From assembly GCA_002269645.1 (NCBI GenBank), contig NIVC01001961.1, forward strand, positions 9,641 through 73,640: a DNA stretch of 64,000 nt, read 5' to 3'. Shown here piece by piece: positions 2,572 through 55,730 of the stretch (its first letter is position 1; the number at the start of each line of letters is the position of its first letter). Below the pieces are notes generated by a model. The model was not told where the DNA came from and did no database searches. It was given only the letters and a program-made list of their open reading frames with translations. The DNA is from Macrostomum lignano. Its lineage: Eukaryota. The translations under genes and the position numbers were made by a program.

Positions 2572-10950
<8,379 letters not shown>

Positions 10951-25279: not shown

Positions 25280-28200
25280 ATGAAGGCGCCTAAAAAGCAG
25301 TCAAAGCAGCAACAGAAGAAGAACAAGCAGTTGAAAACAAAGAAGCAGTCGGATGAAAGCCAGGAAAATGGGCACAGTGCAGAGGTAGCTGCCGAGGACA
25401 CTGAGAAGCCTGAGGCTGAGCAGCAGCCTGGCGACCGCAGCCTGGAGCAGTTCGACCTTCCAGACTCTGTGCTGCATCAGTTGCGAGAGCGCGGCATTAC
25501 CGGCCTGTTTCCAGTGCAGCAGCAGTCGTTTGATCACGTGATGTCCGGTCACGATCTCATTGTGCAGTCGCGCACCGGCACAGGAAAGACGCTGGCCTTC
25601 GGGCTGCCCATTGTCCTTCAGCTGCTGAAGCAGCAGGACAAGCGGGCTGGCAAAGCCGGGGTGAGAAAATTTTTATTGAGCTCTCTGGCTTCTTTATCGA
25701 CAGCAACGCTTGACAGCTCAAGAACTTCTTGTCAGCTCAATCTCACATCGTTAAGAATGTCTTGTCAGAACTTTCAATCTCACATCGTTGAGAACTTCTT
25801 GTCAGCTCAATCTCACATCGTTAAGAATGTCTTGTCAGAACTTTCAATCTCACATCGTTGAGAACTTCTTGTCAGCTCAATCTCACATCGTTGAGAATGT
25901 TTTGTCACCTCAATCTCACATTGTCAAGAACTTCTTGTCAGCACAATCTCACATCGTTGAGAACTTCTTGTCAGCTCAATCTCACATCGTTGAGAATGTT
26001 TTGTCAGTTCAATCTCACATTGTCAAGAACTTCTTGTCAGCACAATCTCACATCGTCAAGAACTTCTTGTCAGCTCAATCTCACATCGTCAAGAACTTCT
26101 TGTCAGCTCAATCTCACATCGTCAAGAACTTCTTGTCAGCTCAATCTCACATCGTTAAGAACTTCTTGTCAGCTCAATCTCACATCGTTAAGAACTTCTT
26201 GTCAGCTCAATCTCACATCGTCAAGAACTTCTTGTCAGCACAATCTCACATCGTCAAGAACTTCTTGTCAGCACAATCTCACATCGTCAAGAACTTCTTG
26301 TCAGCTCAATCTCACATCGTCAAGAACTTCTTGTCAGCTCAATCTCACATCGTTAAGAACTTCTTGTCAGCTCAATCTCACATCGTTAAGAACTTCTTGT
26401 CAGCACAATCTCACATCGTCAAGAACTTCTTGTCAGCACAATCTCACATCGTCAAGAACTTCTTGTCAGCTCAATCTCACATTGTTAACCTCCTTACTTT
26501 GCCATTCAGACGCCAGCCAAGCGGCGGTCCCCGAATCGAGCCCCGCGCGTTCTCATCCTGGCGCCGACCCGCGAGCTGGCCAAGCAGATCTCTGACGATC
26601 TGACGGCCACCTGCCCGCCGGACAGCGGCCTGGTAGTGCTGCCGGTCTACGGTGGCGTGCCGTACGAGAAGCACCGCTCGGCCCTGGCCGCCGGGTCGGA
26701 CATTGTGGTTGGCACGCCCGGCCGCGTACAGGACCTGGTCGAGCAGGGCTGCCTGCGGATGGACAGAATCCGCCGGGTGGTGCTGGATGAAGTCGATAGG
26801 ATGCTGGATATGGGATTCCGCGACTCGGTTGATCAGCTGATCAAGCGGCTGTACAGCGGCGGCGAGGAAGATGCTGGCCAAGAGGAGAAGAAGAGGCCGC
26901 AGACTCTGCTGTTCTCGGCTACGCTGCCCTCCTGGGTGAGTTAGTCCTGAGTTCGAATCTTTCTCTGATTCTTATTAGTACAATTTCGGATTCTCGATCT
27001 CAAATTCTTAAGATCCTAACCTTGGAGATCTCTAATCCAATATATATGATTCCTTAAATCCCAAGTATGATATCCCAGATCCCAATTCCACTATCCCAGA
27101 TCTCGTTTGCCTAGATCCCAAATCTGGTACCCCAGATCCCAGTTCCTAGATCCCAAATCTGATATCCCAGATCCCAGATCTCATTTGCCTGGATCCCAAA
27201 TCTGATATCCCAGATCCCAGATCTCATTTGCCTGGATCCCAAATCTGATATCCCAGATCCCAGATCTCATTTGCCTGGATCCCAAATCTGATATCCCATA
27301 TCCCAGATCTCATTTGCCTAGTTCCCAAATCTGCGATCCGAGATCCCAGTTCCTAGATCCCAAATCTGATATCCCAGATCTCATTTGCCTGCATCCCAAA
27401 GCTGCGATCCGAGATCCCAGTTCCTAGATCCCAAATCTGATATCCCATATCCCAGATCTCACTTGCCTAGTTCCCAAATCTGCGATCCGAGATCCCAGTT
27501 CCTAGATCCCAAATCTGATATCCCAGATCTCATTTGCCTGCATCCCAAAGCTGCGATCCGAGATCCCAGTTCCTAGATCCCAAATCTGATATCCCATATC
27601 CCAGATCTCACTTGCCTAGTTCCCAAATCTGCGATCCGAGATCCCAGTTCCTAGATCCCAAATCTGATATCCCATATCCCAGATCTCATTTGCCTAGTTC
27701 CCAAAGCTGCGATCCGAGATCCCAAGTGCATAAATCAAACTAGCAAATGCATAAATCCCCATGCAGGTCGAAGAGACCTCTGCCAAGTACCTGGACCCGG
27801 ACAACCTGGTCCGCCTGGACCTGGTCACCGGTGACGGCCAGGGCCGGGCCGCCCAGACCGTCGAGCACCTCGCCATCCTGTCGCCGTTCGCCTCGCGCAG
27901 CGCGGCCATCGCCGACGTGATCCGAGTGAGGTGCGGCGGCCCGCAGGCCCGCTGCATCGTGTTCTGCGAGCGCAAGCGCGACGCCGACGAGCTGGCCTCG
28001 CACGCGGCGATGTCCGGCGACTGTCACGTCCTGCACGGCGACATTCCGCAGGACAAGCGCGAATTGGTGCTGCAAAAATTTCGCGACGGCAAATACCGAG
28101 TGCTGGTGACCACCGATGTGGCCGCCCGCGGCCTGGACATCCCGCATGTTGACCTGGTGATCCTGTGCCACCCGCCCAAGGACACCGAGTCCTACATCCA

Positions 28201-30537: not shown

Positions 30538-33500
30538 ATGAAGGCTCGCTTCACCACTCTGGACATTGTGGCCGTCGTGGCCGAGATCTCACAGAGCTGC
30601 ATTGGTCTGCGAGTGTCCAACGTCTACGACATCAATAATAAGACCTACTTGATTCGGCTGAGCAAGCCCGATCACAAGGTGAGAGCGATGGTCGTGATTT
30701 TGGTTTTCGAGCATGTTTAATTTAAATTTGGAATTATTTTCTCTTTTAGAAATTACCCCTATGTATAAAGAACATTGTTGCTTTCAGGAATGTCGCCTTA
30801 TAACCTTACAGAAGTCGCCTTCGAATGTTTAGGAATCGCGATCTTCAGAAATCGCCCTCTAATCTTTAAGGATCGCCTTCTTATCTTTAGGAATCGCCCT
30901 TTGATATTTAGGAATCGCCCTTTGATCTTTAGGAATCGCCCTTTGATCTTTAGGAATCGCCCTCTAATCTTTAGGAGTCGCCCTCTTAATATTTAGGAAC
31001 CGCCCTTTAATCTTTGGGAATCGCCTTTAATCTTTAGGAATCGCCTCGGAATCTTTATTAATCGCCCTCTAATCTTTAAGAATCGCCCTGTGATCTTTAG
31101 AAATCGCCCACTTATCTTTAGAAATCGCCCTCTTATCTTTAGGAATCGTCCTCTAATCTTTAGGAATCGCCTTCGACTCTTTGGAATCGCCCTCTTATCT
31201 TTTGGAATCGCCCTATTATCTTTTGGAATCGCCCTCTTATCTTTAGGAGCCGCCCTCTAATCTTTAGGAATCGCCTTTTTATCTTTAGGAATCGCCCTCT
31301 AATCTTTATAAATCGCCTTCCCTCACGCATGCCAACCGTGACTCGCCTGTCCCCAGGTGACCCTGCTATTCGAGTCGGGCATCCGGCTGCACATCACGGA
31401 CTTTGACTGGCCGAAGAACATCACGCCCAGCGGTTTCTCAATGAAGCTGCGCAAGCACATCAAGAACAAGCGGCTGGAGCAGATCCAGCTGGTTGGCATC
31501 GATCGCATTGTTCGGCTGCAGTTCGGCACGGGCGAATGGACTTTCCACCTCATTGTGGAGCTGTACGATAAGGGCAACGCCCTGCTCACTGATCACCAGT
31601 TCACCATCGTGCACCTGCTCAGGCCGAGGACAGACGCGGCAGACCAGACCAAGATCGTCACCAGCGAGACCTACCAGCTGGACAAGGCCAGGCAGGCCTG
31701 CGACTGGAGCCTGGCCGCAATCGCCCCGGTTTGCTATGCAGCCGCCACTCAGAAAGGCCAGCTGGCCAGGTCCCTCACCGGCCTGTTCCCCTACGGAGGT
31801 CCCCTGCTCGATCACTGCCTCCGCGTCGCGTCCGGCCAGTCGCTGAAGTCGCTGGAGTCGCAGCTGACGCCCGACTCAGTGGAAGCCGCGGCCGCTGCCG
31901 CCTTGGCCGCCTTCGAGCTGGGCGAGACGATTGTGGCCAGCCTGCGCGACCGGCCTGACGACTCTGTGCGAGCCTGCGTCACCACCAAGCCGCGCGAGGT
32001 CTCCTCCGTAGCGACGGGTTCCGCTGCGTCTGGCACAGCGCCTGCGGCGGCCTCGGTAGATCCGTACAGCGGACTGGACTTTCTGGAGTTTCACCCTATG
32101 GAGCTGGTGCAGACTGAGGGCAAGGACAAGATCCGCTTTCACAGCTTCAATAAGGTGGGCTGGAGCGCGCCTTGCTCAGATTCATATGCTATGCCCCATA
32201 CCCCAATACCATCCTAAAGTCCCATAACCCAATACCATCCTAAAGTCCCATACCCCAATACCATCCCCGAACCCCATACCCCAGTACCATCCTAAAGTCC
32301 CATAACCCAATACCATCCTAAAGTCCCATACCCCAATACCATCCCCGAATCCCATACCCCAATACCATCCCCGAGCCCCATACCCCAATACCATCCCCGA
32401 ACCCCATACCCCAATACCATCCCCGAACCCCATACCCCAATACCATCCCCGAATCCCATACCCCAATACCATCCCCGAGCCCCATACCCCAATACCATCC
32501 CCGAACCCCATACCCCAATACCATCCCCGAACCCCATACCCCAATACCATCCCCGAATCCCATACCCCAATACCATCCTAAATTCCCATACCCCAATACC
32601 ATCCACGAACCCCATACCCAATACCATCCCAAAGTCCCATACCCCAATACCATCCCCGAATCCCATACCCCCAATACCATCCCCGAATCCCATACCCCAA
32701 TACCATCCCCGAATCCCATACCCCCAATACCATCCCCGAACCCCATACCCCAATACCATCCTTGAATCCCATACCCCAATACCATCCCCGAATCCCATAC
32801 CCCAATACCATCCCCGAATCCCATACCCCCAATACCATCCCCGAACCCCATACCCCAATACCATCCCCGAACCCCATACCCCAATACCATCCCCGAATTC
32901 CATACCCCAATACCATCCCCGAATCCCATACCCCAATACCATTCCCGAATCCCATACCCCCAATACCATCCCCGAACCCCATACCCCAATACCATCCCGA
33001 ACCCCATACCCCAGTACCATCCTAAAGTCCCATAACCCAATACCATCCTAAAGTCCCATACCCCAATACCATCCCCGAATCCCATACCCCAATACCATCC
33101 CCGAGCCCCATACCCCAATACCATCCCCGAACCCCATACCCCAATACCATCCCGAACCCCATACCCCAATACCATCCCGAATCCCATACCCCAATACCAT
33201 CCCCGAGCCCCATACCCCAATACCATCCCCGAACCCCATACCCCAATACCATCCCCGAACCCCATACCCCAATACCATCCCCGAATCCCATACCCCAATA
33301 CCATCCTAAATTCCCATACCCCAATACCATCCACGAACCCCATACCCCAATACCATCCCAAAGTCCCATACCCCAATACCATCCCCGAATCCCATACCCC
33401 CAATACCATCCCCGAATCCCATACCCCAATACCATCCCCGAATCCCATACCCCCAATACCATCCCCGAACCCCATACCCCAATACCATCCCCGAACCCCA

Positions 33501-36500
33501 TACCCCAATACCATCCCCGAATTCCATACCCCAATACCATCCCCGAATCCCATACCCCAATACCATTCCCGAATCCCATACCCCAATACCATCCCCGAAC
33601 CCCATACCCCAATACCATCCCCGAATCCCATACCCCAATACCATCCCCGAATCCCATACCCCAATACCATCCCAGAACCCCATACCCCAATACCATCCCC
33701 GAATCCCATACCCCAATACCATCCCCGAATCCCATATCCTCACAGCCTACTTCATTCCGCAACCCGGATATATTCCCAGCGTGAGCTACAAAATATCATT
33801 ACTGCGATCCCGAACCCAGGCTGTAGACGAATTTTTCCTCAAAATGGAGAGCCAACGCCTGGACCAGAAGGCCCTGCAGCAGGAGAAGGCGGCCCTGAAG
33901 AAGCTGGACAACATCAAGCAGGACCACGAGAAGCGGCTCGCCGAGCTGGCCGAAGCGCAGATCACCGACAGGGAGAAGGGCGAGCTGCTGCAGCTGAACC
34001 TGGCCGCGGTGGAGAAGGCCCTGCTGGTCATTAACAGCGCCCTGGCCAACCAGCTGGACTGGGAGGCCGTGGCTGAACTCGTGTCCACTGCCCGCGCCCA
34101 GGGCGACCCCGTGGCGGCCTTGATCCAGGTGATACTGGGCACTCTGGATTTTTAGTTGCTGGGCCAGCCTCCCAGATCCTCAGTTTCTGGGCCAGCCTCC
34201 CAGATCCTCAGTTGCTGGGCCAGCCTCCCAGATCCTCAGTTGCTGGGCCAGCCTCCCAGATCCTCAGTTGCTGTGCCAGCCTCCCAGATTCTCATTTGCT
34301 GGGCCAGCCTCCCAGATCCTTAGTTGCTAGGCCAGCCTCCCAGATTCTCAGTTGCTGGGCCCACCAGGCTCCCAGATCCTTAGTTGCTAGGCCAGCCTCC
34401 CAGATCCTCAGTTGCTAGGCCAGCCTCCCAGATTCTCATTTGCTGGGCCAGCCTTCCAGATCCTCAGTTGCTAGGCCAGCCTCCCAGATTCTCAGTTGCT
34501 GGGCCCACCAGCCTCCCAGATCCTCAGTTGCTGTGCCAGCCTCCCAGATTCTCATTTGCTGGGCCAGCCTCCCAGATCCTTAGCTGCTAGGCCAGCCTCC
34601 CAGATTCTCAGTTGCTGGGCCCTACCAGCCTCCCTCAGTTGCTGGGTCGCTGCCAGCCTCCCAGATCCCCATTTACTCAGCCGGTACGTTCCTGTCCATT
34701 TAAAGTAGACCTTGCTCTAAATAAAGCCGCGAATTTATGCAGGAGCTCCGCCTTGACCGCAACGCAATTGTGTTGCGCCTATCGAATCCGTTCGACCCGA
34801 GCACCGGAGTCACAACATTGAGATCGACCTGGCCACTAGCGCCTTCGGCAACGTCAAGCGGCTGTTCGACCAGAAGAAGCAGTTCGCAGCCAAAGAGGAG
34901 AAGACTAAGCTGGCGTCGGAGAAGGCGCTCAAAGCTGCCGATAAGAAGACGCATGAGATGCTTAAGGAGGCGCAGAAGGTGGGATTTTGTGGGTTTTCTG
35001 TGGGATTTGTAAGGGTTAAGTGTGGGATTCTGTTGGAATCTGTGAAATTTGTAAGGGCTTAGTGTGGGATTGTTTGGTTTTCTGTGGGATTCTGTGGGAT
35101 TTGTGAGAATTTAGTCTGGGATTCTGTGGGATTTGTAAGGGTTTAGTGTGGGTTTGTGTGGGTTTTCTGTGGGATTCTGTGGGATTTGTGAGGATTTAGT
35201 CTGGGATTCTGTGGGATTTGTAAGGGTTTAGTGTGGGATTGTGTGGGTTTTCGATGGGATTCTGTGGGATTTGTGAGGATTTAGTCTGGGATTCTGTGGG
35301 ATTTGTGATGATTTAGTCTGGGATTCTGTGGGATTTGTGTTGGATTTGTGAGGATTTAGTGTGGGATTCTGTTGGATTTGTGTTGGTTTAGTGTGGGATT
35401 TGTGAGGGTATAGTGTGGGATTCTGTGGGATTTGTAAGGGTTTAGTGTGGGATTGTGTGGTGTGGGACTCCACACGCCATTCCGCAACCCCACAAACATG
35501 GCAGGTGAGCAGCATCGCCAAAGTCCGCAAGCCGCTCTGGTTTGAGAAATTCTACTGGTTCGTCAGCAGCGAGAACTACGTTGTGATTGGCGGCCGCGAC
35601 CAGCAGCAGAACGAGTTGATCGTGAAGCGGCACCTCAAGGCCGGGGACCTGTACGTGCACGCGGACCTGCACGGAGCCAGCAGCGTGGTCATCAAGAACC
35701 CCACTGGAGAGCCGGTGCCGCCAAAGACTCTGAATGAGGCCGGCCAGATGGCTGTGGTGTACTCCAGCGCCTGGGCCGCCAAGGTGGTCAGCAACGCCTG
35801 GTGGGTGCACCATCACCAGGTGTCGAAGGTGGCTCCCACAGGCGAGTACCTGACCAGCGGCAGCTTCATGATCCGCGGCAAGAAGAACTTCCTGCCCAGC
35901 GTGCAGCTCACCTTCGGCTTCGGCTTCCTGTTTCGCATCGACGAGGAGTCGGTGCCGAATCACCGGGGCGAGCGCGCCGCGGCGCCCTACTCGGCCGCTG
36001 ACCTTGTCGGCGACGAGTCTGACGGAGCGGCCGCGGAGGCCAGCCTGCCGACTCTGCCGGAGGTGCTGGAGTTCGGCGAGGATGACGAGCAGCCGGCAGA
36101 CGGCACCAACGACGTGGAGATTCGCTACGAGTACGGCGCCGACGGTCGATTTGAGGTCGCCCGGCAGGCCTCGACGATGTCCGCCGCGGACAGCCACGCC
36201 GCCGAAGATGCCAGTGGGGCCGGCTCGCTTCGCCGCCGGGTTGACAGCGTGGCCTCCGTCACGTCTTCAACCAGCGGCAGGCGCAAGATGGCCGCTCACG
36301 AGAGGCGGGCGGCGCGCAGGCAGCTGAAGGCCCAGCAGCAGGCCAAAGATGGCACTGACTCATCAGAGTCGGCCGCCGCCAAACTCGAAGCTGACGAAGA
36401 CATGCAGAGCCTGCAGGTGGAGGATCTGGAGGCCGACGCCGGAGACACCGACAGCGACAGCGAAGATGACGAGCCCGGACTCGCATTGAAAGCAGAGCAG

Positions 36501-36648
36501 CCTGATAATGGGGGAGAGTCTGGACAGAGCTCAGATGATGATGCCGACACTGTCCAGCCTCTGGTGGCGGCTTCAGCAAAGCAAGAGGAAGCCTCAGCGG
36601 TGCCAGTCGAAACTCTGCAAACTTCTGCGCCTGGAAACAATCAGAAAA

Positions 36649-36694
<46 letters not shown>

Positions 36695-37334
36695 ACAGCT
36701 GGTGAAGCGGGGTCAGCGCTCCAAGCTGAAAAAGATGCAGGCCAAATACAAGGACCAGGACGAAGAGGACAGGCGGCTGGCTATGAGCCTGCTGCAGAGC
36801 GGCGGCAAGAAGCAGCAGCAACAGCAGCAAAAGCAGCAGCAGCAGCAGAAGCAGCAATCAAAGCAGAAGCAAAAGCAACAGCAACAGCAGAAGCAAAGAC
36901 AGCAGCAGCAGCCGCCCCAGCCGCAGCCTCCAGCGGCTGTCGCAGTCGCCGCCGAGGATCATCTGTTCGACGACGCAGACGACGACGAAGAGGCAGGCGC
37001 CGCCTCAGGCGCTGGCGGTCCCGGCGCCCAGGACCGCGAATTGCTGGAGTCCCTGACTGGCCAGCCGCTGCCAGACGACATTCTGCTGTTCGCCATACCC
37101 GTGTGCGCGCCCATCGGCACCCTGGCCTCTTACAAGTTCAAAGCCAAGCTGACCCCGGGCACGACCAAGCGAGGCAGAGCCGTCAAGACCGCCCTGGCCG
37201 TGTTCACCTCCGACAAGTCGTGCAGCCGCGCGGAGCGCGACCTCATGCGCGCAGTGAAGGACAATGACCTGTGCTGCAACCTGCCCGGCAAAGTCAAGCT
37301 GTCTCTGGCTGGAGTGACTAAGCAGAAAAAATGA
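30538..37334 (+). CDS. NEMF: Ribosome quality control subunit NEMF (Rqc2), ~1100 aa, with an apparent 1-nt deletion in exon 4
   Basis: Exons 30538-30678, 31357-32154, 33820-34128, 34743-34978 and 35505-37334. Motifs: MKARFTTLDI, NVYDINNKTYLIRL, SGFSMKLRKHIKNKRLE, ELYDKGN, WFEKFYWFVSSENY..IGGRDQQQNE, YVHADLHGASS, KVAPTGEYLTSGSFMIRGKKNFL, LFAIPVCAP, KAKLTPG..KRG. Confidence 0.94.
30830..31320. repeat. 21 bp minisatellite in NEMF intron 1
   Basis: Unit ggaatcgccct(t/c)t(g/a)atcttta. Confidence 0.95.
32190..33740. repeat. 25 bp minisatellite in NEMF intron 2
   Basis: Unit cccataccccaataccatccccgaa; source of the GMGFGDGIG ORF artefacts. Confidence 0.97.
34155..34670. repeat. ~28 bp minisatellite in NEMF intron 3
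   Basis: Unit gggccagcctcccagatcctcagttgct. Confidence 0.95.
34979..35460. repeat. GT-rich degenerate minisatellite in NEMF intron 4
   Basis: gtgggattctgtgggattt units starting at the donor. Confidence 0.92.
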
Positions 37335-37551
37335 TTATGCTTCATTTTCATATTTGACTTGTACAGGCTCTACTGATGTTGAGAATCGCCCTCTACACCC
37401 TGGTGAATTTTTGTTTGCGTCGGTATCTGGCTCATTCGTTTCCTTTATCGCAATGCAGATTAATGGACACTGTCAATTCTGTCCGAGCCAAGGACTACTA
37501 AAAGTAGAAGGACGGAAAACCTCGTTTCTTAGAAAATTTTAGAATAGGCAG

Positions 37552-37819
37552 AATTGGGACATGTGCAACCGACAGCTCAGCCGCAGCTATTGCGCGGCGC
37601 ATCTGAAGGCTGCGTACGGCTGTTCAGTCCAAGGACTGGGGGGGGGGTCGCCACACACGCCCTCAATTACCCCAGCTAATGCTGGCACCCATTTGAACTG
37701 AAGCAATTCAAAGTTAAGTGTCTTGCTCAAGGACACAATTTGTTCCGAGTGGGATCGGGAATCGAACCCCCGATCTTCCAGTCGTGAGTCAGACGCTCTA
37801 ACCACTGGGCTACAACCCC
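37552..37819 (-). mobile_element. tRNA-derived CORE-SINE, copy 1
   Basis: Reverse complement starts ggggttgtagcccagtggttagagcg (A box), then ggttcgattcc (B box), then the CORE-like tgtgtccttgagcaagacacttaac. Near-identical to 59608-59883. Confidence 0.88.
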
Positions 37820-38189
37820 ATTTGTACCATTTTTATGATTATTAGGCACCGTACATACTCGTATACCGGTGCAAGTCGGCATTTAAACCTAGGATATAAA
37901 GTTAACATAGAATTTCTATTTTCTAAATGAAGAGCTTTATAAATATCAATGAGAGCCTAAGAAATGTAGTTTTCCTCCTACTACTTGAGCAGTCCTTGGT
38001 CTGATTCTGTGCGCTGCAGTGGCGCATAAATAAATAAAATCAACTCTAGTTACCAAGTTTCTGTATTTTGTAGAAATTATCGTGGCTGTTTGTCCTCAGA
38101 TGTAAAAATTCGCTATTGAGAAATCAGTGTTTATTTATTTACTATAGAAACTACTACTTATACTATAGCATGCAACTACTGTGCAAAAT

Positions 38190-38651
38190 CTACGGCACAA
38201 AGTGCAGTCTGCAATTGTCAGCCATTGGTTTCGGCGCCAGCACCCTGGCGCCAAGGCAAGCGCCAACTGCGGCCATCACGGCTCCCCTCCGCCTGGCCTT
38301 GCACTCGAGGTTCTTGTAGCTCGGGCCGCTCGGCCGGCCGTGGCTGGACTCGCAGACCAGCTCTGTGAAAATCCCTGTTGCCGGATGTCCGGTCTGGCAC
38401 AGCCGGCTGCCGCAGGCCTCCCTGCGTAACGGGGTGCAGCTCAGCAGCGTCTTCTGCCTCCGCCAGGCGCTCCTGTTCCACACCGCGAAGTCGGCGCCGT
38501 CTCGCTCTGGAAGCGCCAGCGCGCCACCCGTGCTGAGCAGTTCAGCAAACTGCGGACAGTCCTGCAGGATTCTGGAGCGCAGGTCCGCGGAGGCGTTGAC
38601 CGCTGCCAGCAAGTGCGCGATGATCAGCAATGTCACTAGGCCTGCGGACAT
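38190..38651 (-). CDS. Unrecognised secreted Cys-containing protein, paralog A (153 aa, intronless)
   Basis: ATG-to-stop ORF with a hydrophobic N-terminus (MSAGLVTLLIIAHLLAAVNASA). It shares CPQFAELLSTG and GACLGARVLAP with the paralog at 40116-40568. Upstream TATAAAAG; AATAAA on the minus strand near 38135. Confidence 0.85.
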   Translation of the reverse strand: MSAGLVTLLIIAHLLAAVNASADLRSRILQDCPQFAELLSTGGALALPERDGADFAVWNRSAWRRQKTLLSCTPLRREACGSRLCQTGHPATGIFTELVCESSHGRPSGPSYKNLECKARRRGAVMAAVGACLGARVLAPKPMADNCRLHFVP

Positions 38652-38713
38652 TGTTGCTTGTCAGTTGGATTCTTCTCTTTCTGAGTTGTCTTCGTGTCTT
38701 GCCAGCTGGCTTG

Positions 38714-38721
38714 CTTTTATA
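38714..38721 (-). promoter_or_regulatory. TATA box of paralog A
   Basis: TATAAAAG on the minus strand ~63 nt upstream of the ATG. Confidence 0.55.
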
Positions 38722-39609
38722 CACAAACCTGATGTTCGCAGCAACTGTAACACTTCCTGTAACGCGTAATCTGCGTCACTGACACATGATCCGCGGGTAG
38801 AAAAATTACCTGCCAGGTAGTAGTAGCCCGGGTGTCATTGTTCCTGTGAGTCCTTCCTAATCTCTAGGCGTTCTATCGTCCATATTCTAAAAATTCGAAT
38901 GCTAAAAATAGAAGCGAACACTTCAACACTTGGGCAGACTGCGCGTACTGAGTGCTGTTCTAAATTTATCTGAGCAGCTTGAGCTGCGGTGTTTTGCTGT
39001 GCTGAGCTTATGGCGACGGCAAGCCCAACTCAGTTGAAGGGCATGAATCAGAAGATGGAAGTCAGTGATGACGGAGAATGGAGGTTTCCATTTTTTCAGC
39101 ACCAAAATTTTTATTGCTTTTGATAGCGAGCAGACCCATCTTGCTTAGCTTACGATATAAGTAATAATTTTATCAGCTTCACATTCAGTAAGCGAGCCTT
39201 TATTAAAGTAGAATTAAAAGGATTTAATTATATATTGGGCTAATATAGGCCATACTTATGAATAGAAGCCTGGTCTAGTCAATGTGTCTCATTTATCTGA
39301 ATGCAAAATCAACCAGCTAAGCTTGATAAAAAGATGGAAAAACAAACGAATCACATTGAAAAGTTTTATTTTTAAGGCACAGGGCGTATCCGTAAGATAT
39401 AAAATTTATATAGAATCCGAATTCTGCAAAATCTCTATGAATACTTAATACAGCTCTTTAAGAAAGGCAAGTCACATCAAAAGATGGACATTGGGTCTGC
39501 CATCAAAACAAATCAAAATCAAAACCTAACCCTAAACCTTCATACTCCGATGTACGAGTACCGGTAAATCTGCCTCATAAAAACTTCCAGAGTTGTCCTT
39601 GGTGGTAGC

Positions 39610-39850
39610 ACATTGAAAAGTCAGATGGAAGTCAGCAGTGACACATTGAAAAGTCAGATGGAAGTCAGCAGTGACACATTGAAAAGTCAGATGGAAGTCA
39701 GCAGTGACACATTGAAAAGTCGGATGGAAGTCAGCAGTGACATTGAAAAGTCGGATGGAAGTCAGCAGTGACACATTGAAAAGTCAGATGGAAGTCAGCA
39801 GTGACATTGAAAAGTCAGATGGAGGTAAGCAGTGACACATTGAAAAGTCA
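39610..39850. repeat. 33 bp minisatellite
   Basis: About 7 copies of gacacattgaaaagtcagatggaagtcagcagt. Confidence 0.95.
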
Positions 39851-40115
39851 GGAAATTCGGAAGTGAGGCAGTGAAACTTCGTATCAAATAAAATTTCTGA
39901 TTGAAGCAGACACTTCTACAGACTTTGAGATGCTCCAATTTGCTGGCAGTTAAAAAAGTGAACTCAATTCAGTTTTAAAAAAATTGGATTGTAATGCAAC
40001 TACTGACAATCTACTGTGTAGGTCAAGTGCAAGCATGTATTTTATCATTTAGCATTTAAATAAATCTCGAAGAACATGCAGACATTCACACAAGCGCGGG
40101 GCGGACAGCAAGATT

Positions 40116-40568
40116 TCAGTCAGAATTCTCAGCAAGGCGCAGGTTGCAGTCTCCGGCCATGGCTCTCGGCGCCAACACCCTGGCGCCAAGGCAAGCGCCA
40201 ATCGCGGCCAGCACGTGGCGCCTCGGCCTGGAGCTGCACCGGAAGGATCCGTACTGCGTCGCGGGGCTGGAGCCACCGGGGCAGGCCACCTCCTCGTATT
40301 CGCCACTGCCCACCAGCGGGTGCGCCACTCTCCGCCGCCGGCTGTTGCAGGCGTCCTTGTGGATCAGCCGGACGCTCCTCGGCTGCCTCGCCTCCTTCCA
40401 GGTGCCGCTGGTCCAGACGGCTCCTCCGTTCGGCCGCAGGTCTAATGCTGCACCTGTGCTGAGCAGCTCGGCGAACTGCGGGCACTCCTGCTTGATGCGG
40501 AGCCGCAGGTCGCATGTCGCCAGCGTTGACAGAGCAACGAAAGTCAGGTAGCCGAGCATGTGGCGCAT
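40116..40568 (-). CDS. Unrecognised secreted Cys-containing protein, paralog B (~150 aa, intronless)
   Basis: MRHMLGYLTFVALSTLATCDLRLRIKQECPQFAELLSTG...AAIGACLGARVLAPRAMAGDCNLRL. The start may be 40568 or 40559. Confidence 0.85.
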   Translation of the reverse strand: MRHMLGYLTFVALSTLATCDLRLRIKQECPQFAELLSTGAALDLRPNGGAVWTSGTWKEARQPRSVRLIHKDACNSRRRRVAHPLVGSGEYEEVACPGGSSPATQYGSFRCSSRPRRHVLAAIGACLGARVLAPRAMAGDCNLRLAENSD

Positions 40569-40669
40569 CTTGAGTTGGTCTGCTCTGCAAGGTAGAGAAA
40601 CTTGTTCGGAGTTCTTGAGCTGCGAGTTGGCTGCTGAGGTCGGAGGAGATCGTGGCCCGCATGGTCCTG

Positions 40670-40677
40670 TATTTATA
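40670..40677 (-). promoter_or_regulatory. TATA box of paralog B
   Basis: TATAAATA on the minus strand ~100 nt upstream of the ATG. Confidence 0.55.
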
Positions 40678-41019
40678 GGCTGGGCCAAACCAGCCCAGAT
40701 CCTTGATGGCGGCCAAAAATCAGGAATTAATTCAAGTCTCCCCGGATGCTGCGCAAGTTTTTTATATTGTAAAATGATGGCATGCGTGTCGCTAGCCCGA
40801 ATCTGCCATTGGCCGAGCGAGTCGGAGACTACTAAAAACATATGCAACCTGGAGTTGGCGGAACCGACTGAGTGAAAAATAATTACCCAGAGTTAGCGGC
40901 AATTCAGGAAGCTGAAAATTGCTTAAAGAAAGTTTTTTTTATATTTGAATCAGTAATAAATCTGATATTCAGGTGTGGATTTTTGATTGGGATAATAATA
41001 GGGATATACTAATAGGGAT

Positions 41020-41240
41020 CGCCGATGGGGGCACCGATGGGGCGCCGATGGGGCGCCGATAAGGGCGCTAATTGGTGGCGCCGATGGGGGCGCCGATGGG
41101 GGCGCCGATGGGGGCACCTATGGGGGCGCTGATGGGGCGCCGATAAGGGTGCTAATTGGTGGCGCCGATGGGGGCACCTATGGGGGCGCTGATGGGGCGC
41201 CGATAAGGGTGCTAATTGGTGGCGCCGATGTGGGCGCTGA
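41020..41240. repeat. GC-rich 11-12 bp repeat ggggcgccgat
   Basis: Includes an adjacent ~60 bp block duplication. Confidence 0.92.
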
Positions 41241-41924
41241 TGCCCACGTATTTTCCGCTCTTTTCAGTTGGGTAATTTAAAAATTTGTAAATTAACAAAT
41301 CTTTATTGCCTACCCTATAAGCATCTTTGATAAGTTTTTTCTTTCCATTCCGAGCTTCTCTATCTAGAAGTCTTTGCGTCAATGTAGCTTTTTTTATGAA
41401 ATCTGCATTGTTACCTTGTCTGTTTGACTGTTGCCGCAAAGCGGTTTATGACCGGCAGTGAGTCACTTGAGCGTCTCGTCCCACCCCCCTCTCCTTTCTG
41501 TTTAGCCTCTGGTTGCGGAACAAGTTATTGCAACTGCTACAAGGGTAATAGTGGATGCAATAAAACCGTAGCTTTGTGTTCGTCCGGCACCTTCTTTGCG
41601 ACTGCGCGAAGCCGGGTGCGAGTCAGCTTCTCAGCTTCACGCGATGCGGACGGACACTGAAGCGACTTTCTTAGATGAGGATGTACAGATAGAGCCTTTT
41701 TATATAAATTATTTTTAAGGTCACTAGTACTGGCGTCCTCACCTAAGTTATTGTATAATGCCTGATTTATTGAGGAACTAGGGGGGGGGGGAGGGGCAGC
41801 TCGCTACCCGACAATTCGAAATGAAACAAACGACCTGCCTTGAGACTTGAGTGCAATTTTGAGGACTCGAGTGCACATCTCAGCATTCCAGATGCGTCGG
41901 ATGGCGCTGAATGGGGAGCTCAGG

Positions 41925-42750
41925 TGTGTTAGATATGTTAGACATGGAGTTCCACCTGTTAGATACAACGAGTGTGTGTTAGACATGTTAGACATGGAGT
42001 TTCACCTGTTAGATTCAACAAGGGTGTGTTAGACATGTTAGACATGGAGTTTCACCTGTTAGATTCAACAGGGGTGTGTTAGACATGTTAGACATGGAGT
42101 TTCACCTGTTAGATACAACAGGTGTGTTAAACATGTTAGTCATGGAATTATATCTGTTAGATACAGCAGGTGTGTGTGTGTTAGACATGTTAGACATGTT
42201 AAACATGGAATTCCATCTGTTAGATACAGCAGGCGTGTGTTAGACATGTTAGACATGGAATTCCATCTGCTAGATATAGCAGGCGTGTGTTAGACATGTT
42301 AGACATGGAATTCCACCTGTTAGATATAGCAGGCATGTGTTAGACATGTTAGACATGGAATTCCACCTGCTAGATATAGCAGGCGTGTGTTAGACATGTT
42401 AGACATGGAATTCCACCTGCTAGATATAGCAGGCGTGTGTTAGACATGTTAGACATGGAATTCCATCTGCTAGATATAGCAGGCGTGTGTTAGACATGTT
42501 AGACATGGAATTCCACCTGTTAGATATAGCAGGCATGTGTTAGACATGTTAGACATGGAATTCCACCTGCTAGATATAGCAGGCGTGTGTTAGACATGTT
42601 AGACATGGAATTCCACCTGCTAGATATAGCAGGCGTGTGTTAGACATGTTAGACATGGAATTCCATCTGCTAGATATAGCAGGCGTGTGTTAGACATGTT
42701 AGACATGGAATTCCACCTGCTAGATATAGCACGCGTGTGTTAGACATGCT
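41925..42750. repeat. ~50 bp minisatellite
   Basis: Unit ttagacatgttagacatggaattccacctgctagatatagcaggcgtgtg. Confidence 0.96.
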
Positions 42751-46543: not shown

Positions 46544-49500
46544 TCAGCAAAGACTCGATCTGCCGTTAGCTCCGCTCTGTCGCAGCCAGACAAAATTGCT
46601 GCCACCAAATTTGTCAGACGGATTTTGCTGCGGCTGCATCGACGGAGGCTGCAGCAGCAGCTCCAAGTTCTCGGTGGGCTGCTCCGACAAGTCCACAACC
46701 TGTAGCTGCCGCTGCTGTCGCTGCTGCTTGGGCTCGCCCGAATTGGAAGGCCGGGTCCTCTCAGCCACCAGCCGGTAAAGCAACTCGATGCATTCGACAA
46801 AGAATGCCAGAGTCAGGCCGATGTACATGGAGCAGAGGCCGCCGATGCGGCTGAACAGAGCGTTGACGGTGAGGACGATCTTCTCCTGCCTCACCAGAGT
46901 GTTGTTGGCGCGCCGCTTCACCATCACGTAGGTGAATCGCTCGTCGAAATGAAAATTGGTGTTGTTGGCCAGCAGCGCCGGGTCAGTGATGTTCCTCATG
47001 CGCAGGTAGTCTTTGACGCGACGCAAACCCCGTTTAAAATTTTCGGGAGTATCCAGCAGCAGGTTCAGCTTCATCAAGTAGTCGTTCCATCGCTCCGACA
47101 CCTCCTTGATCCAGTGCAGCATCCAGTGGGTGTCGCGCCACTTCGTGACCGAGAGCTCCTTGCGGTAACTGAGCTCGGTGCACCTGGGCAGGCAGTCGGT
47201 CGCCTCGAACTGCTGCCGAATCCTTCGCTGATCGATGCTCTTGGCGCACCTCAGCCTGCTGAACAGTTTGTCGTCGATGAAGCCGCAGTAGGGATGGCTG
47301 GCGTTTGCCTGCGTCACCAGGGGCAGCTCGACGTACAGACAGCCACAGGCGCTGAGGAAGGCCTCCTGCACCTTGGTGTTGAGGCACAGCTCCTGGTCGT
47401 AGTTGTACATCTGGCCGTGATCGGCGAAACGTCGTCGACGAATCTCGGCGTCGTCCAGGCAGAGACTGCGCGGTGTGTTGGCGCGGACGAAGCGCTCGGT
47501 CTGGTACTTGATCTCGTTCATCTTGCCCGGCTCCGTCTGGACACCCTGCCGCAGCATCTGCGAGCGCAAATGGTAGATTGCGTAGTAGGTAAGGGCCTGA
47601 AATAATGGCCAAACACGAGTGCGCGTAGCAACGTCATTGTCTATAAGACACATAGAGGCCATTATTTCAGCATAGCGCAGTCTGGCGGCCATTATTTCAG
47701 CGTGCCGGAAGCGGACAATATTTCACACTTTTTTAATTGGCTGTTTTGAGAGTTATTTTACCCATAGACGACTAAGATGTGTGTCTTAGTTTGACCATAG
47801 ACAACACTGTGATGAGTGCTGATTTCGTTTGCGTCTTGCTAAGCTATTGCGTAAGCTATTTGTCTTGTCAAACAACTATGGCTGGTGCATCTCGTCAAAC
47901 AACTATAGCTGGTGCATCTCGTCAAACAACTATGGCTGGTGCATCTCGTCAAACAACTATAGCTGGTGCATCTCGTCAAACAACTATAGCTGGTGCATCT
48001 CGTCAAACAACTATAGCTGGTGCATCTCGTCAAACAACTATAGCTGGTGCATCTCGTCAAACAACTATAGCTGGTGCATCTCGTCAAACAACTATAGCTG
48101 GTGCATCTCGTCAAACAACTATAGCTGGTGCATCTCGTCAAACAACTATGGCTGGTGCATCTCGTCAAACAACTATGGCTGGTGCATCTCGTCAAACAAC
48201 TATGGCTGGTGCATCTCGTCAAACAACTATGGCTGGTGCATCTCGTCAAACAACTATGGCTGGTGCATCTCGTCAAACAACTATAGCTGGTGCATCTCGT
48301 CAAACAACTATGGCTGGTGCATCTCGTCAAACAACTATGACTGGTGAATCTCGTCAAACAACTATGACTGGTGAATCTCGTCAAACAGCCCCGCTTATTA
48401 ATTGGAAAAATCTTCTTGTCAACGACTGAACGATCCGGGCGACCTATGCTTCAGTGGAGGTGACACAGGATATGCGGGTGAAGCATGGTAAGTATAATAT
48501 GTCAACATTGTAAATAAATTAGTGGCTATACTAATGGCCATAGAGAAACTGTGGATTTTTTACAATGTCCATTAATCTGCAGGTCGGATGGATTCGGAAC
48601 GCGCAGTTCGCTTCTTCGAGAACTGCCACTTCAAGAATTGCACGTTTTAGTTTTAATGAACAACTTCTGATGAAGAGACCATGACTACTGTGCTGTTTTT
48701 GTGCTTAATGTGCGCGTTTTCCATGGATTGTTAGCTAAAATGTCTTGACTATCCTTATTTTGAGTGTATTCCATGCCATGTAGACTGTTTGCGAACATCA
48801 TTCCCTTATGTCAGTTAATAAGTGCATAGTTAACTAAACGTCTATGGTTCAAACGCCTGCTAAAGCTGAACTAATGGCCATTTGAGTTTTTCATTACGCC
48901 AGGCTGTGTCTTATGGACAATAGCGGAGTGGGGAAATGGCTGCGCCGATTATTGGACAACAGGAAATGTTTTTTATTGCTGGGGGAATTGTGACTGACTT
49001 GGGACTGTTATTTCCCTTGTAAATAACAACTCAATAAGTAACTTCCTTGTAACGTGCATAAAATCCAGCAAGGTCTTCGCTAAGTCTATTTTGGCTCATT
49101 TCAAGCTGCGATTTGCAACCACTCCGGGCCAAAAATCGCTAAAGACGCAGTATTCATCTATTTTTTTCAGGCTTTTTAAAGCGAAGAAAATAGCTCAGAT
49201 CTCAGGTCTCTGGCAACCATGATTCCAGATTTTTCTGTAGGACCAATTCCCTATTCCTCGATTCTCCACTCCCCATTCCCCAATTCCCTATTTCCCATTC
49301 CAGATTCCCCGATTCCCCATTCCCCATTCCCCGATTCCCCATTCCCCGATTCCCCATTTCCTGATTCCCCACTCCTCGATTCCCCATTCCCCGATTCCCC
49401 ATTTCCTGATTCCCCACTCCTCGATTCCCCAATTCCCCGATTCCCCAATCCCCGATTCCCCATTTCCCGATTCCCCATTTCTCGATTCCCCATTCCCGGT

Positions 49501-52500
49501 TCCCCATTTCCCAATTCCCCATTCTCCGATTCCCCATTCCCCGATTCCCCATTTCCCGATTCCCCATTTCCCGAATCCCCATTTCCCGATTCCCCGATTC
49601 CCGATTCCCCATTCCTCGATTCCCCATTCCTCGATTCCCCATTCCCCGATTCCCCATTTTTCGATTCCCCATTTCCCGATTCCCCGATTCCCGATTCCCC
49701 ATTCCTCGATTCCCCATTCCTCGATTCCCCATTCCCCGATTCCCCATTCCCGATTCCCCGATTCCCCATTCCCCGATTCCCCATTCCCCGATTCCCCATT
49801 CCCCGATTCCCCATTTCCTATTCCCGGTTTCCGATTCCCCATTCCCCGATTTCCCATTCCCCGATTCCCCATTCCCCGATTCCCCATTCCCCGATTCCCC
49901 ATTCCCCGATTCCCCATTCCCCGATTCCCCATTCCCCGATTCCCCATTCCCCGATTCCCCATTCTCCGATTCCCGATACCGCAACCGCTACAGTCAGTTA
50001 ATAATAATTATTTTTCTGGAGTCAGCTGTCTCGTAGACAATAAAATATGCCTACAAAAACATATTGTCTCCCTGCACCTGGCCGCGTCTTGCGCGGGCAA
50101 ACTGCCTCTACTTCCTTAGGGAAAAAACAAACTTGCTCTCTGGCCCTGCGAACAGTAAGAAATTGAGAAGAGGCGAACGGTCCTGGAGTAATTTGGTAGC
50201 GGAGATCACGGAATCCCAGCGACCTCAGGCTCAGGGCGTTTTGGGGGCCAGCGTTATTGTTATATTCTATATCTGGAATAAATCTGGGAGGGAAAAAGCT
50301 TTTATTCAGATCGAGATGGATTTCTCCCATCCCCTCTCTGCCCTCCCAGCGCCATGCGGCAGTCAAATCAGGCTGTTTTGCAAATGGGTTCTGTACGGAA
50401 GTAGAAGAAAAGAGAAGTAATAAAATGAATGCACCTTTATCGTCTCTACACCTGATCAAAATAGTGCATTGTTTGCTTTTCAAGATTTAGAAATTCAAGT
50501 GGTTTCTTTTGCGAGCATCTAGAAAAATTTAAGTGTATATACGAGTGACGTCACGCACTGCCCTCAGCCGGTGCAGGAAGTGCGTGAGCTGATGCCGCGG
50601 CCACCCTACCAGCAGGGACAGTCTAGCTCTCGGCCTCTTTTCGATTTCCCGCATAAGAATCCTCAACTATTTAAATTATTTTATTCCAATTCCTCCAACT
50701 GGAGAAGCGCCAGTGAATGATTGACGACTTTCTGAGTCAGTACGGATCGGAGTACTTGCGCCAACCAGCCGCAGAAATAAATCTTCAACTATCTTTGCAT
50801 CGAGTTAAATCGCGCCCACTGATTCATCGTTTACGCTGGAGCCGCAAGTTACACTGCCGGCAGCAACTGAATGCAATAAACAATTCAGCGACATTTAACT
50901 CTGATGCAAATCGACCGATAAAGCTGTGGTGCGCCATAAACTGAACCTTTCGCTGGCTTCCAGCCAAAAGGTTAGTTCGCTAAAAGCCGCGATTTCTATT
51001 GACTTGACATCTCTGTGGCGGGAGCTCGATTGGATTTTGGGACAATTTTTTTCACCGGTCGCGTTGGGATCGATTGGATTTGCTACTATTATGGGCTTCG
51101 GACGCACTGGCACAGCGAACACTCGTTGAGGGCCTTTAAAGTGTTTTTTGCTATTGTAAGCAGAGTTTGATCTGCAGGGAAAATAGTTTTGATCAAATTG
51201 GATAAGTATGACGCTTAGGACACTTAGACACGAGATGATGTAACTACGAGCTATTTCAGACACTATTGAAGGCGTGTTAGACACTAGTTAAGGCGTGTTA
51301 GACACTAGTTAAGGCGTGTTGGACACTAGTTAAGGCGTGTTAGACACTAGTTAAGGCGTGTTAGACACTAGTTAAGGCGTGTTAGGCACTAGTTAAGGCG
51401 TGTTAGACACTAGTTAAGGCGTGTTAGGCACTATTTAAGGCGTGTTAGACACTAGTTAAGGCGTGTTAGACACTAGTTGAGGCGTGTTAGGCACTATTTA
51501 AGGCGTGTTAGACACTAGTTAAGGCGTGTTAGACACTAGTTAAGGCGTGTTAGACACTAGTTGAGGCGTGTTAGACACTAGTTAAGGCGTGTTAGACACT
51601 AGTTAAGGCGTGTTGGACACTAGTTAAGGCGTGTTAGACACTAGTTAAGGCGTGTTAGACACTAGTTAAGGCGTGTTAGGCACTAGTTAAGGCGTGTTAG
51701 ACACTAGTTGAGGCGTGTTAGGCACTATTTAAGGCGTGTTAGACACTAGTTAAGGCGTGTTAGGCACTTTAAATGTTCAAGCGTCTCACAAGGACCACAA
51801 GATATTTTTGTTCGCACTTTTCCCTAGAAACTGAGTTAGATTAACGATCCCAGCTCACCGCAGGGTGGCTTCCCGGCTCGTGCACAGCCACACGCAGTCC
51901 GTAGGCCTGCTCGAATATGTCGAAAAGGAAGCCCTGCTTGTGCTGGACTCCGTAACTCTCCACGGGACCCAGCCAGATAATGAGCGCCAGGCTGAACACG
52001 TCCTGAATGACATCCGGGTTGAACTGCAGCGTGTAGCAGTTGAAATAGTTCGGGTGGCTGAACGTCGTCACATCTAGCAGCCTGTCGTAGCAGCCCTTCG
52101 TGCCCTGCACCTGCGCAGAGGAGAACTTGAAAATGCAGTCGACGAATGAATCGTTCCTGGAGTGGCCCAGCATCGCCGCTTGGGACGCCTTCAAGTTTTG
52201 AAAGTAGAGCCTGGATGAGTCCATAGGGAGGGTCAGCTGAAGCGCTTTCATGCTGGCGGACAAGACCTCCTTGTACTCTTGGTCGGTGGCGTCGCTCTGC
52301 GGTTCGGTCACTTTCTTCTCGTACGCGCCTTCGATGTCCAGCTCCGAGAGCAGTCGAAGACCATGCTGGCGCAGCTGCCAGTTGAAGTCAGTCGGTGATG
52401 GCACGGTTTTGTCCGTCCAGAGTCGGAAAGCATTCTTCGAGAACGGCTGGTTGTTGCAGATGCTCACCGCCGGGAACGGGCTGACGTCGTCCAGATCGAG

Positions 52501-52695
52501 CCGGGTCTGGATGTTCACGTCGTACTGCAGGTAGTCGAGGGTGACGTTCACGGCGCTGTAGAACAGCAGGGAGGTGGAGCCGAGCACGAACAGGACCCAC
52601 AGGTGGCTGAGAAAGCGGCTCGGACTCTTGAAAATCCGACCGACACCGCGAATGCTGGTGCTCTCGAGGAAGGCTCTGGTCTCTTCTGAGATCAT
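46544..52695 (-). CDS. DEG/ENaC (amiloride-sensitive sodium channel family) subunit, ~616 aa, two exons
   Basis: Exons 52695-51859 and 47557-46544 join in phase 0 (HEPGSHPA|[11 protein letters not shown]). TM1 [47 protein letters not shown], a Cys-rich thumb region, and TM2 [25 protein letters not shown]. Confidence 0.93.
47868..48386. repeat. Near-perfect 27 bp minisatellite in the ENaC intron
   Basis: About 19 copies of tcgtcaaacaactat(a/g)gctggtgcatc, with no spacers. Confidence 0.97.
49240..49975. repeat. 15 bp minisatellite in the ENaC intron
   Basis: Unit ttccccgattcccca. Confidence 0.96.
51262..51768. repeat. 21 bp minisatellite in the ENaC intron
   Basis: Unit gacactagttaaggcgtgtta. 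Confidence 0.97.
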
Positions 52696-54062
52696 CGTTC
52701 GGTGTGCGACTGCCGCAGGTGAGGAAGTTGTGGGCGTTTAGCTTAGGGTGGTCCAGAAAGGCATAACAAACTGAGTTTCCCCTAGAGCTCCATGGATGCT
52801 TTTTAATCCATTTTAATCTAAAACAATATTGGTACTTGCTTCAAAAAACATGAGGACACAGCATGAAATCGGCAGTGCAGTTTTTTAGGCACTGCTCAAA
52901 GTCATCGTCAGCTGCGTGATGAATGCCTTCAGCTGTAGATACTTCAGTTATTGAAACGGGTGTTCTTTAAGAAAACTTCTGCACCTTCCTAGTTTTCAAA
53001 GCAAGTAGCAAGATTTTTCAAGTAAAAATATCATCAGAAAAAGGTCTATAAGCATGCATGTATCAAATTTCAACCCAATCCACCAACCCAGTGCATAGAA
53101 AACTCAATTTGTCATCTGGGAGACCTTTCGGGACCATCAGCTGTAATCGCTATAGTCAGGGAAGAAATTCTTGACGACTTTTAAAGGATTAAGGAGGCTG
53201 CCGAAGATACGCAACAAATTATGGCCTCGCAATCATGAAAAAATTCAAATAAAATACAGCTCCTGCTCCGTCGTTTCCCCGCCTACATAAAAACTCACTC
53301 AGTGACTCCCGATATTTGATAAACAACTCAAGCGCTTTTCCAAATGCAATTAAATAAATTAATTTTCAAACCCAATTCAAGTTATGATTTGCTTAATCAA
53401 CACAAAATTTCTCCAATAGATTACTCACGCTATAATTGTTGCGAATGCGCTGCACCTGCGGCTTAAGCTGAAAGATAAAGTTTCAGAGCTCAAGGTGGAT
53501 TCCAGAAGTCAGCTAGCAATGGAATGCTGGGCGGATGCCAATAAGGCCGTTGGAATTGGTTGGAGGGAGATATCCTCGATTTGAGATCCTCGGCTCTGGC
53601 TCTGCCATTGGCTGGGGATTTTGCCAGTCCACGCTGGGCGCTGCAAGTCCGGCAAAGCCCCAGCCTTCTCCCTTGAGCAGGCGGAGAAGTGCTCCCGGAT
53701 TGACAAAATCTGTAATCAGCATTCTGAGTAAACAGCGGGGGCTGCGGCCCCCTGCTCCTGGATTTGTGTACTCATTTTCAGCCAGGGCGACTCAGGTTAG
53801 GGCAGCCCGGTCGCTTAGCAACCAAAACTGGAGATGTCATTCTCGGGTGAAATGAAAAGCCTGAAAAGTTGGGGATAAGTTATACAAGCGTGTAACGACT
53901 GTCAGATGCGATGGCAATTTGCGGGGACTACGAGGTCAATCCAGAGTGAAATGATGAATTTCTAGATGCAAAAGAACGGTTCAAATAGGATCCTCCAAAT
54001 GAGAAATTCAGTGCCAATGTAAAACCCTGTATGAGTGCGTGCCTTCGCTCGTACCAGTGAGT

Positions 54063-55310: not shown

Positions 55311-55730
55311 AAGTGTGACGTCAATGCAAATTGCGGCTGAATCACGCCAGCCCGCCGTCATGAACTGACGAATGTCTGTCGCACTGGCAAGGTGGCAATG
55401 AATAATCATTGTATTTGTAGTCCCATGTAAATTTCTGCTCCAGCTGTAGACTGCTGTGCCCTCGGCCTGTTAGCGTGAAATTGCTTTTGGCATCGACACG
55501 CCAGGGCAGGGCAGCTCTGGGAGTTGCGCCGGGAGTGAAACCCGTCGGATCATTCTAAGAAAATAGCTGGAGCCGATCGAAAATATTGCAATTTTGTATG
55601 CGACTGACGGATCCCGCTGCGGATTGACTGGGCTCGTTCTGAATTTTAGAATGCTGGAGTAATGTGATGCTCGGATTCCAGCTGATCTCTTCAAATATAC
55701 TATTGAAACTAGTTAAACATTACTTTATCG

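Follow-up and report, generated by a model that had tools for sequence, protein, structure and literature searches.

Precursors of the natriuretic-peptide type are processed by convertases and carry a C-terminal disulfide-ring peptide; they serve here as a lead only. In the flatworm Macrostomum lignano, putative seminal fluid proteins are represented by the prostate-limited transcripts Mlig-pro1-76 (Weber et al. 2018, PMC5977470), 31 of which (31/76) have no BLAST hit; a signal peptide is present in 38 of the 65 predicted proteins. Genes related to reproduction are fast-evolving in Macrostomum (PMC7336406). The locus considered here is a gene pair, designated A and B, located at positions 38,190 to 40,677 of a 64,000-nt stretch of M. 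lignano DNA (assembly GCA_002269645.1, contig NIVC01001961.1, positions 9,641 to 73,640, forward strand), which is referred to below as the window. With a probability of about 0.7, A and B are real genes encoding secreted, disulfide-bonded, basic proteins of ~14 kDa, which form a taxonomically restricted family: the N-terminal segment and a hydrophobic C-terminal Cys loop are conserved in it, and the middle evolves freely.

Two co-oriented open reading frames (ORFs) of ~150 aa lying 1.5 kb apart, each with its own TATA box, had been described in the first-pass annotation. Their length is 153 and 150 aa, and 1,464 nt separate the ATG of A from the stop codon of B. The coding sequences (CDS) and their transcription signals are located as follows.

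38190..38651, (-) strand: CDS of gene A, stop codon included, single exon, precursor of 153 aa (ORF list; paralogy to B)
40116..40568, (-) strand: CDS of gene B, stop codon included, single exon, precursor of 150 aa (ORF list; paralogy to A)
38714..38721, (-) strand: TATA box of A, TATAAAAG, starting 70 nt upstream of the ATG of A
40670..40677, (-) strand: TATA box of B, TATAAATA, starting 109 nt upstream of the ATG of B
38134..38139, (-) strand: polyadenylation signal AATAAA of A, 51 nt past the stop codon of A

The length of B is counted from the Met of 'MRHMLGY'. The mechanically defined ORF of B reaches 40847, its extra part being located upstream of the B TATA box. On the same strand, TATA motifs occur in 2.6% of 80-nt windows and in 1.2% of those with a local GC content of at least 0.5. 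Both ATG contexts have A at position -3. The pair had also been set apart from its neighbours as intronless and TATA-driven; the sequence agrees with single exons and contains the TATA boxes, but the contrast is weak, since all genes of the window are intron-poor and have large exons. The mean exon length in Macrostomum genomes is ~800 nt (PMC10468722), so a single-exon CDS of 150 codons is unremarkable here. A tBLASTn survey of family size, proposed with the initial description and run on the 64-kb window, returned exactly two copies, A and B.

A splice-acceptor-like site, tttctctaccttgcag, which is a good match, is found at 40585-40600 (-), 16 nt before the ATG of B. It could be the end of a 5' untranslated region intron or a trans-splice acceptor. 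Spliced leaders of Macrostomum end in ATG (PMC10468722); a leader ATG trans-spliced at tttctctaccttgcag would be out of frame with B.

A and B are paralogs, with 41% identity over 150 aa (BLASTP, E 4e-33). The shared terminal motifs and the diverged middle described in the first-pass annotation are reproduced by the alignment, in which identity is 76% in the N block (19/25), 28% in the middle (19/67) and 63% in the C block (19/30). The motif DLRxRIxQ[DE]CPQFAELLSTGxAL is common to both N blocks, and AA.GACLGARVLAP...C.L, which contains an 11-residue identical run, to both C blocks. The same two blocks were recovered independently by a repeat finder, their positions coinciding with D5 (107 nt, 78%) and D6 (61 nt, 79%), the only long direct repeats linking A and B.

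38517..38591, (-) strand: conserved N block of A, SADLRSRILQDCPQFAELLSTGGAL, start of the mature protein, 19/25 residues identical to B, repeat D6
40443..40517, (-) strand: conserved N block of B, TCDLRLRIKQECPQFAELLSTGAAL, from the alignment to A, repeat D6
38211..38300, (-) strand: conserved C block of A, KARRRGAVMAAVGACLGARVLAPKPMADNC, 19/30 residues identical to B, repeat D5
40146..40235, (-) strand: conserved C block of B, SSRPRRHVLAAIGACLGARVLAPRAMAGDC, from the alignment to A, repeat D5

An alignment extended by 140-200 nt into either flank shows DNA similarity only within the CDS; the indels of the mature part all measure 6 or 9 nt and are thus multiples of three. The pair is probably an old tandem duplication of a single-exon gene driven by a TATA promoter. 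Within the C block, at ~38238-38257 (-) and the equivalent positions of B, 11 consecutive codons show a single synonymous change and hold a conserved 8-bp hairpin, GGCGCCAG-GGTG-CTGGCGCC. An RNA-level cause of this near-identity is not supported: the hairpin folds no better than shuffled sequences (z -1.1, -1.6).

The nonsynonymous (dN) and synonymous (dS) substitution values for A versus B, obtained as Nei-Gojobori estimates, differ strongly along the protein. In the N block dN is 0.23 and dS is 1.00, which gives a dN/dS of ~0.23 (columns 23-45, most of the block). In the middle dN is 0.76 and dS is 0.79 (dN/dS ~0.96, near the neutral rate), and in the C block dN is 0.28 and dS is 0.37. This pattern indicates that constraint is concentrated in two short blocks and the cysteines. 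The family had been called fast-evolving, which is true of the middle; the ends are constrained. The N-terminal segment and the hydrophobic C-terminal segment (GACLGARVLAP in a Cys-x14-Cys loop) may form the functional or structural core of the protein, and the ~70-residue middle would keep only Cys, Trp, His-Pro, Gly and Tyr landmarks, the rest drifting in an approximately neutral manner.

The GC content by codon position is 0.61/0.56/0.80 in A and 0.63/0.57/0.83 in B, the third-position value (GC3) matching that of neighbouring bona fide exons (0.78-0.85). Base shuffling of either CDS left the frame open in ~2% of trials. High GC content is able to hold several frames open at once, and A and B could be decaying duplicates or chance ORFs without function. 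The same GC-rich DNA does contain other long frames, namely antisense ORFs of 134/135 aa and a same-strand ORF of 195 aa in another frame overlapping B (40129-40716, (-)). However, this last frame reaches no more than 87 aa in A before it closes. The proposed frame alone stays open in A as well as in B; it starts with Met followed by a hydrophobic leader and terminates at the boundary of the similarity. The flanks cannot be aligned, yet the CDS keeps the protein identity given above, in-frame indels and six Cys; dN in the N block lies far below dS; and TATA boxes, Kozak context and predicted signal peptides are retained in both copies. A non-functional pair is therefore regarded as very improbable.

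Neither protein could be assigned to a described family, which agrees with the first reading, where no domain was recognised. Pfam returned no family for A or B even at E up to 10, and NCBIfam and PHROGs returned none even at E up to 1. A word-index search of 5.8 billion proteins with B gave no match, B itself included, and the exact-sequence look-up of A gave no record. In the PDB sequences, phmmer with A produced only a spurious match (E 0.029) to a NADH-quinone oxidoreductase chain, and the A+B profile produced only matches of the C block (E ~1) to an algal leader peptide. The PDB comparison covers RNase A, IL-17, saposins, cystine-knot factors and defensin-like folds. Possible resemblances to an RNase A-like protein (C-terminal 'LHF'), an IL-17-like protein ('EAC...C', 'VGAC') and an insulin-like protein found no support in Pfam or PDB, and B does not conserve the residues behind them.

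Among 1.84 billion representative sequences, an exhaustive phmmer search yielded no credible homolog of A; the only matches, P0001 and P0002, are giant proteins built of internal repeats, and their scores add up one weak, short match 19 and 5 times, respectively. The E value of 1.2e-29 for P0001 is reached only after the 19-fold summing, a single repeat unit scoring 31.6 bits against A. Residues 57-92 of A resemble one HRM-like Cys repeat unit of P0001, a protein of protist type (W...QxTLxC...SRLCxxGxP); B has no similarity to this HRM-like family (E 31), and the matched Cys are the two private ones of A. Judged from these sequences, the likeness to P0001 and P0002 is due to chance. The metagenome contig scan revealed no relative of A or B; with the back-translated C block, the single match was a GC-rich contig (L001) that shares only the 11 residues searched for. 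Relatives of the kind that horizontal acquisition would call for were not found among 185,579 bacterial and archaeal species genomes. Marks of a gene carried by a mobile element or virus were likewise not observed: viral contigs (IMG/VR) gave no relatives, and the region 37300-42000 has no inverted repeats and no direct repeats bracketing A or B. A literature search for the peptide motifs of A and B returned nothing.

These negative searches speak for taxa outside Macrostomorpha and for the M. lignano UniRef set. A and B are not on record in the annotation- and transcript-derived collections searched, which could be taken as a further sign that the pair is non-functional. However, the NEMF and DEG/ENaC genes of the same window, used as controls, also have no near-identical match in these collections, so the absence of A and B from them is uninformative. 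The description of the family as lineage-specific can be kept in part, with respect to taxa outside the clade of the window: no homolog is found outside Macrostomorpha. Read from sequence, the family is restricted with respect to taxa outside Macrostomorpha and to the M. lignano UniRef set, which says nothing of its being young or small.

Signal-like N-termini had been noted for both ORFs. By inspection, both leaders have a hydrophobic core and conform to the -3/-1 rules.

38592..38651, (-) strand: predicted signal peptide of A, MSAGLVTLLIIAHLLAAVNA, by inspection, with cleavage predicted after VNA
40512..40568, (-) strand: predicted signal peptide of B, MRHMLGYLTFVALSTLATC, by inspection

In A, the best 10-aa Kyte-Doolittle mean is 2.71, which is strong, and small residues occupy positions -3 and -1. 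In B, a basic n-region is followed by the hydrophobic core LGYLTFVALSTLA, with A/C at -3/-1. A cleavable signal peptide would route the ~150 aa precursor into the secretory pathway. Mature A would then comprise 133 aa (pI 9.44, 15 Arg) and mature B 131 aa (pI 9.75, 17 Arg); both contain RR, RRR or RRRR runs, as expected from their earlier description as Arg-rich proteins with di- and tribasic sites. The six aligned Cys and the extra pair of A, also reported earlier, are borne out by the alignment. In mature numbering, C12/60/80/97/112/127 of A correspond to C10/55/77/92/107/122 of B, the last aligned Cys being spaced 15 residues apart in both proteins, and the pair specific to A consists of C52 and C65. 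The mature protein, of ~14 kDa and with a pI of 9.4-9.8, would be stabilised by disulfides, four of them in A and three in B.

The C block allows another topology. If A and B were small type I membrane proteins, its stretch AVMAAVGACLGARVLA, with small-xxx-small spacing, would be a transmembrane helix, followed by a cytoplasmic tail of 10-15 residues with a conserved, possibly palmitoylated Cys; the ectodomain would then hold an even number of Cys, 6 in A and 4 in B. No other internal stretch of these proteins is as hydrophobic as the C block (Eisenberg mean 0.3-0.5; Kyte-Doolittle mean ~1.56 over 18 residues, hand tally), which has almost no amphipathic moment. The C block is counted as the best-conserved segment, and its G-x3-G and A-x3-A spacing is typical of helix-helix packing. 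However, the stretch is short, weakly hydrophobic and holds a conserved Arg, and the positive-inside rule would be reversed, with RRR/RPRR on the would-be outside and a neutral or acidic tail. In addition, the sole database similarity of the C block is non-significant (E ~1) and points to a signal/transit-like peptide. Membrane anchoring of A and B is considered unlikely.

In the secreted protein proposed here, the basic residues in front of the C block may have another role. The sites KARRR in A (38286-38300) and RPRR in B (40218-40229), the latter being a consensus R-x-R-R convertase motif, directly precede a Gly/Ala-rich hydrophobic stretch, which is followed by the Cys-x14-Cys loop of each C block. 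The arrangement expected of a convertase-processed precursor, R-x-[KR]-R flanking a conserved peptide, is thus present in both proteins at the motif level only. A furin-type convertase may cut at the R-x-R-R/K-A-R-R-R site before the C block, and the product would be either a two-chain protein or a free disulfide-looped hydrophobic peptide of 31-33 aa. The basic site divides the Cys into two even-numbered groups (6+2 in A, 4+2 in B), which is compatible with proteolytic processing.

A sharper form of this processing step would make A and B precursors similar to those of prohormones or antimicrobial peptides, the only active product being the 31-33 aa C-terminal looped peptide freed at RxRR and the remainder being a fast-evolving pro-region. 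The basic site is kept in both proteins directly before the conserved block (R-P-R-R in B, K-A-R-R-R in A), the Cys-x14-Cys loop is conserved, and the region upstream of the basic site has diverged with a dN/dS of ~1. However, conservation of the N block, next to the signal peptide, is no weaker (76%, dN/dS 0.23), and four upstream Cys are conserved as well; neither is expected in a disposable pro-region. The amidation motif G[KR][KR] is absent from A and B. No conserved dibasic site follows the N block; in B none occurs before residue 58, so that no such site bounds its N block. A precursor with the looped peptide as its only active product is quite doubtful.

A bolder and rather improbable proposal is that A and B are the founding members of a family of flatworm peptides or effectors that has not been described before. 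Cleavage by a furin-type convertase would free a conserved, hydrophobic, disulfide-looped peptide of 31-33 aa (GA[VI]..GACLGARVLAP....C), which would act on membranes or on a receptor. The N-terminal domain, bonded by Cys and with loops that evolve neutrally or adaptively, would be a chaperone or specificity module. In Macrostomum, such a system could, for example, act as a manipulator within the seminal fluid or in the defence of the epithelium.

Several points weigh against the reading of A and B as genes for secreted, disulfide-bonded proteins with a constrained core. The overall dN/dS is ~0.7 (dN 0.53 and dS 0.75 for the whole CDS). Differences are distributed nearly evenly over codon positions (0.39/0.40/0.43), which also speaks for a non-functional pair; this calls for caution but does not contradict the reading, given that the flanks can no longer be aligned. 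No AATAAA or ATTAAA signal was found within 400 nt past the stop codon of B. The hydrophobic core of the B leader is moderate, weaker than that of A, and the leader was read by inspection. AlphaFold2 with the two-sequence alignment gave a predicted local distance difference test (pLDDT) score of 40.7 for the precursor and 36.6 for the mature protein, and values this low provide no fold support for the disulfide scaffold. In proteins rich in Arg, a motif as short as the convertase site could arise by chance. Finally, the roles proposed for A and B are drawn entirely from analogy.

The pair is located among genes of other types.

14254-21004, (-) strand: gene which we take to be STT3, named by eye from ORF translations
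25-29 kb: DEAD-box helicase gene
31.3-37.3 kb: NEMF gene with the domains NFACT_N, NFACT-R_1 and NFACT-C
46544-47692 and 51841-52695, (-) strand: DEG/ENaC (ASC) channel gene identified with Pfam, two very large exons

The neighbouring genes are intron-poor, with very large exons and a GC3 of ~0.8; this exon-intron structure is in line with the published assemblies of Macrostomum. The last exon of the predicted STT3 gene gave no match in Pfam. This gene shows a sharp compositional switch: its first coding exon (20663-21004) lies in a stretch of 29% GC and has a GC3 of 0.27, and GC3 is 0.64-0.83 in the downstream exons. It also carries an Ala/Ser/Gly-rich insert. The best matches of NEMF are 72-76% identical and confined to the NFACT-R domain; the Logan contig that covers NEMF most widely has a GC3 of 0.39 and does not come from a close relative. 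The last NEMF exon (35415-37334, (+)) encodes more than 600 aa in one piece, with long poly-Gln, Gln/Lys runs and acidic low-complexity inserts between NFACT-R and NFACT-C. The DEG/ENaC channel is closest to Macrostomum lignano, from which three proteins match it at 63, 54 and 51% identity; proteins of neodermatan flatworms, cestodes and trematodes, come next at 36-39%. This order places the window among macrostomid flatworms. The two exons of the channel gene are split by an intron of ~4 kb full of minisatellites.

A tRNA-derived element similar to a short interspersed element (SINE) occupies 37590-37819 (-), between the NEMF stop codon and the 3' end of A. Its head (37750-37819) is scored as a tRNA at 34.5 bits by Rfam, ARAGORN calls none, and its body carries a core of the 'gtgtccttgagcaagacacttaac...aaatgggtgcc' type. 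The density of minisatellites is extraordinary over the whole window. Their units are ~12-100 nt long, and many are found in introns and intergenic spacers; they create long spurious repetitive ORFs in several frames. Examples are located at 368-1477, 1811-2796, 3485-4237, 5027-6791, 8369-9235, 25788-26603, 32292-33762, 39609-39851, 41020-41242, 41924-42500, 47779-48429, 49202-50001 and 54039-55368.

If A and B are expressed, a flatworm lineage that serves as a model of regeneration, bioadhesion and sexual conflict gains a secreted family that has no known homologs and had gone unannotated. The leading candidates for functions of the seminal fluid and the glands in this lineage are secreted orphans that evolve fast. 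With two short, tightly conserved blocks set in a drifting Cys scaffold, the pair offers clear handles for RNA interference, in situ hybridisation and assays of peptides. By itself, the pair is one more taxonomically restricted secreted family, with no bearing on a long-standing open question.

The described system that is closest in lineage, at the genus level, is the Mlig-pro1-76 set, which resembles A and B in the small size of its proteins, the presence in many of them of a signal peptide, as predicted for A and B, and the lack of a BLAST hit for many; proteins of this class are reported to evolve fast (PMC7336406). What defines the class is expression restricted to the gland cells of the prostate and transfer in the ejaculate. 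A has no sequence similarity to the M. lignano UniRef proteins (exhaustive search). Because of these orphan prostate secretions and the fast-evolving reproductive genes of Macrostomum, a reproductive (seminal fluid type) or a defensive role appears, by analogy, to be the most likely one. Coral SCRiPs (PMC2652719) share with A and B a signal peptide (predicted in A and B), a conserved Cys framework with variable loops, tandem paralogs and the lack of homologs outside a narrow clade, but have no relation to them in sequence or Cys pattern. Compared with SCRiPs-type families, A and B differ in their larger size (~130 aa in the mature form) and sparser Cys (6-8, the last ones 15 residues apart).

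The likeness to natriuretic-type precursors could be found in the predicted signal peptide, the RxRR-type site and the conserved C-terminal peptide of ~30 aa with one presumed disulfide. The ring sequence is unrelated, the N-terminal part of A and B is itself conserved and predicted to be Cys-bonded, and their cleavage is suggested at the motif level only. By analogy with the prostate transcripts and SCRiPs, A and B would belong to the class of taxonomically restricted gland-secreted proteins. Judged from their sequences, they are a new sequence family of a familiar type, that of lineage-restricted, presumably secreted Cys proteins.

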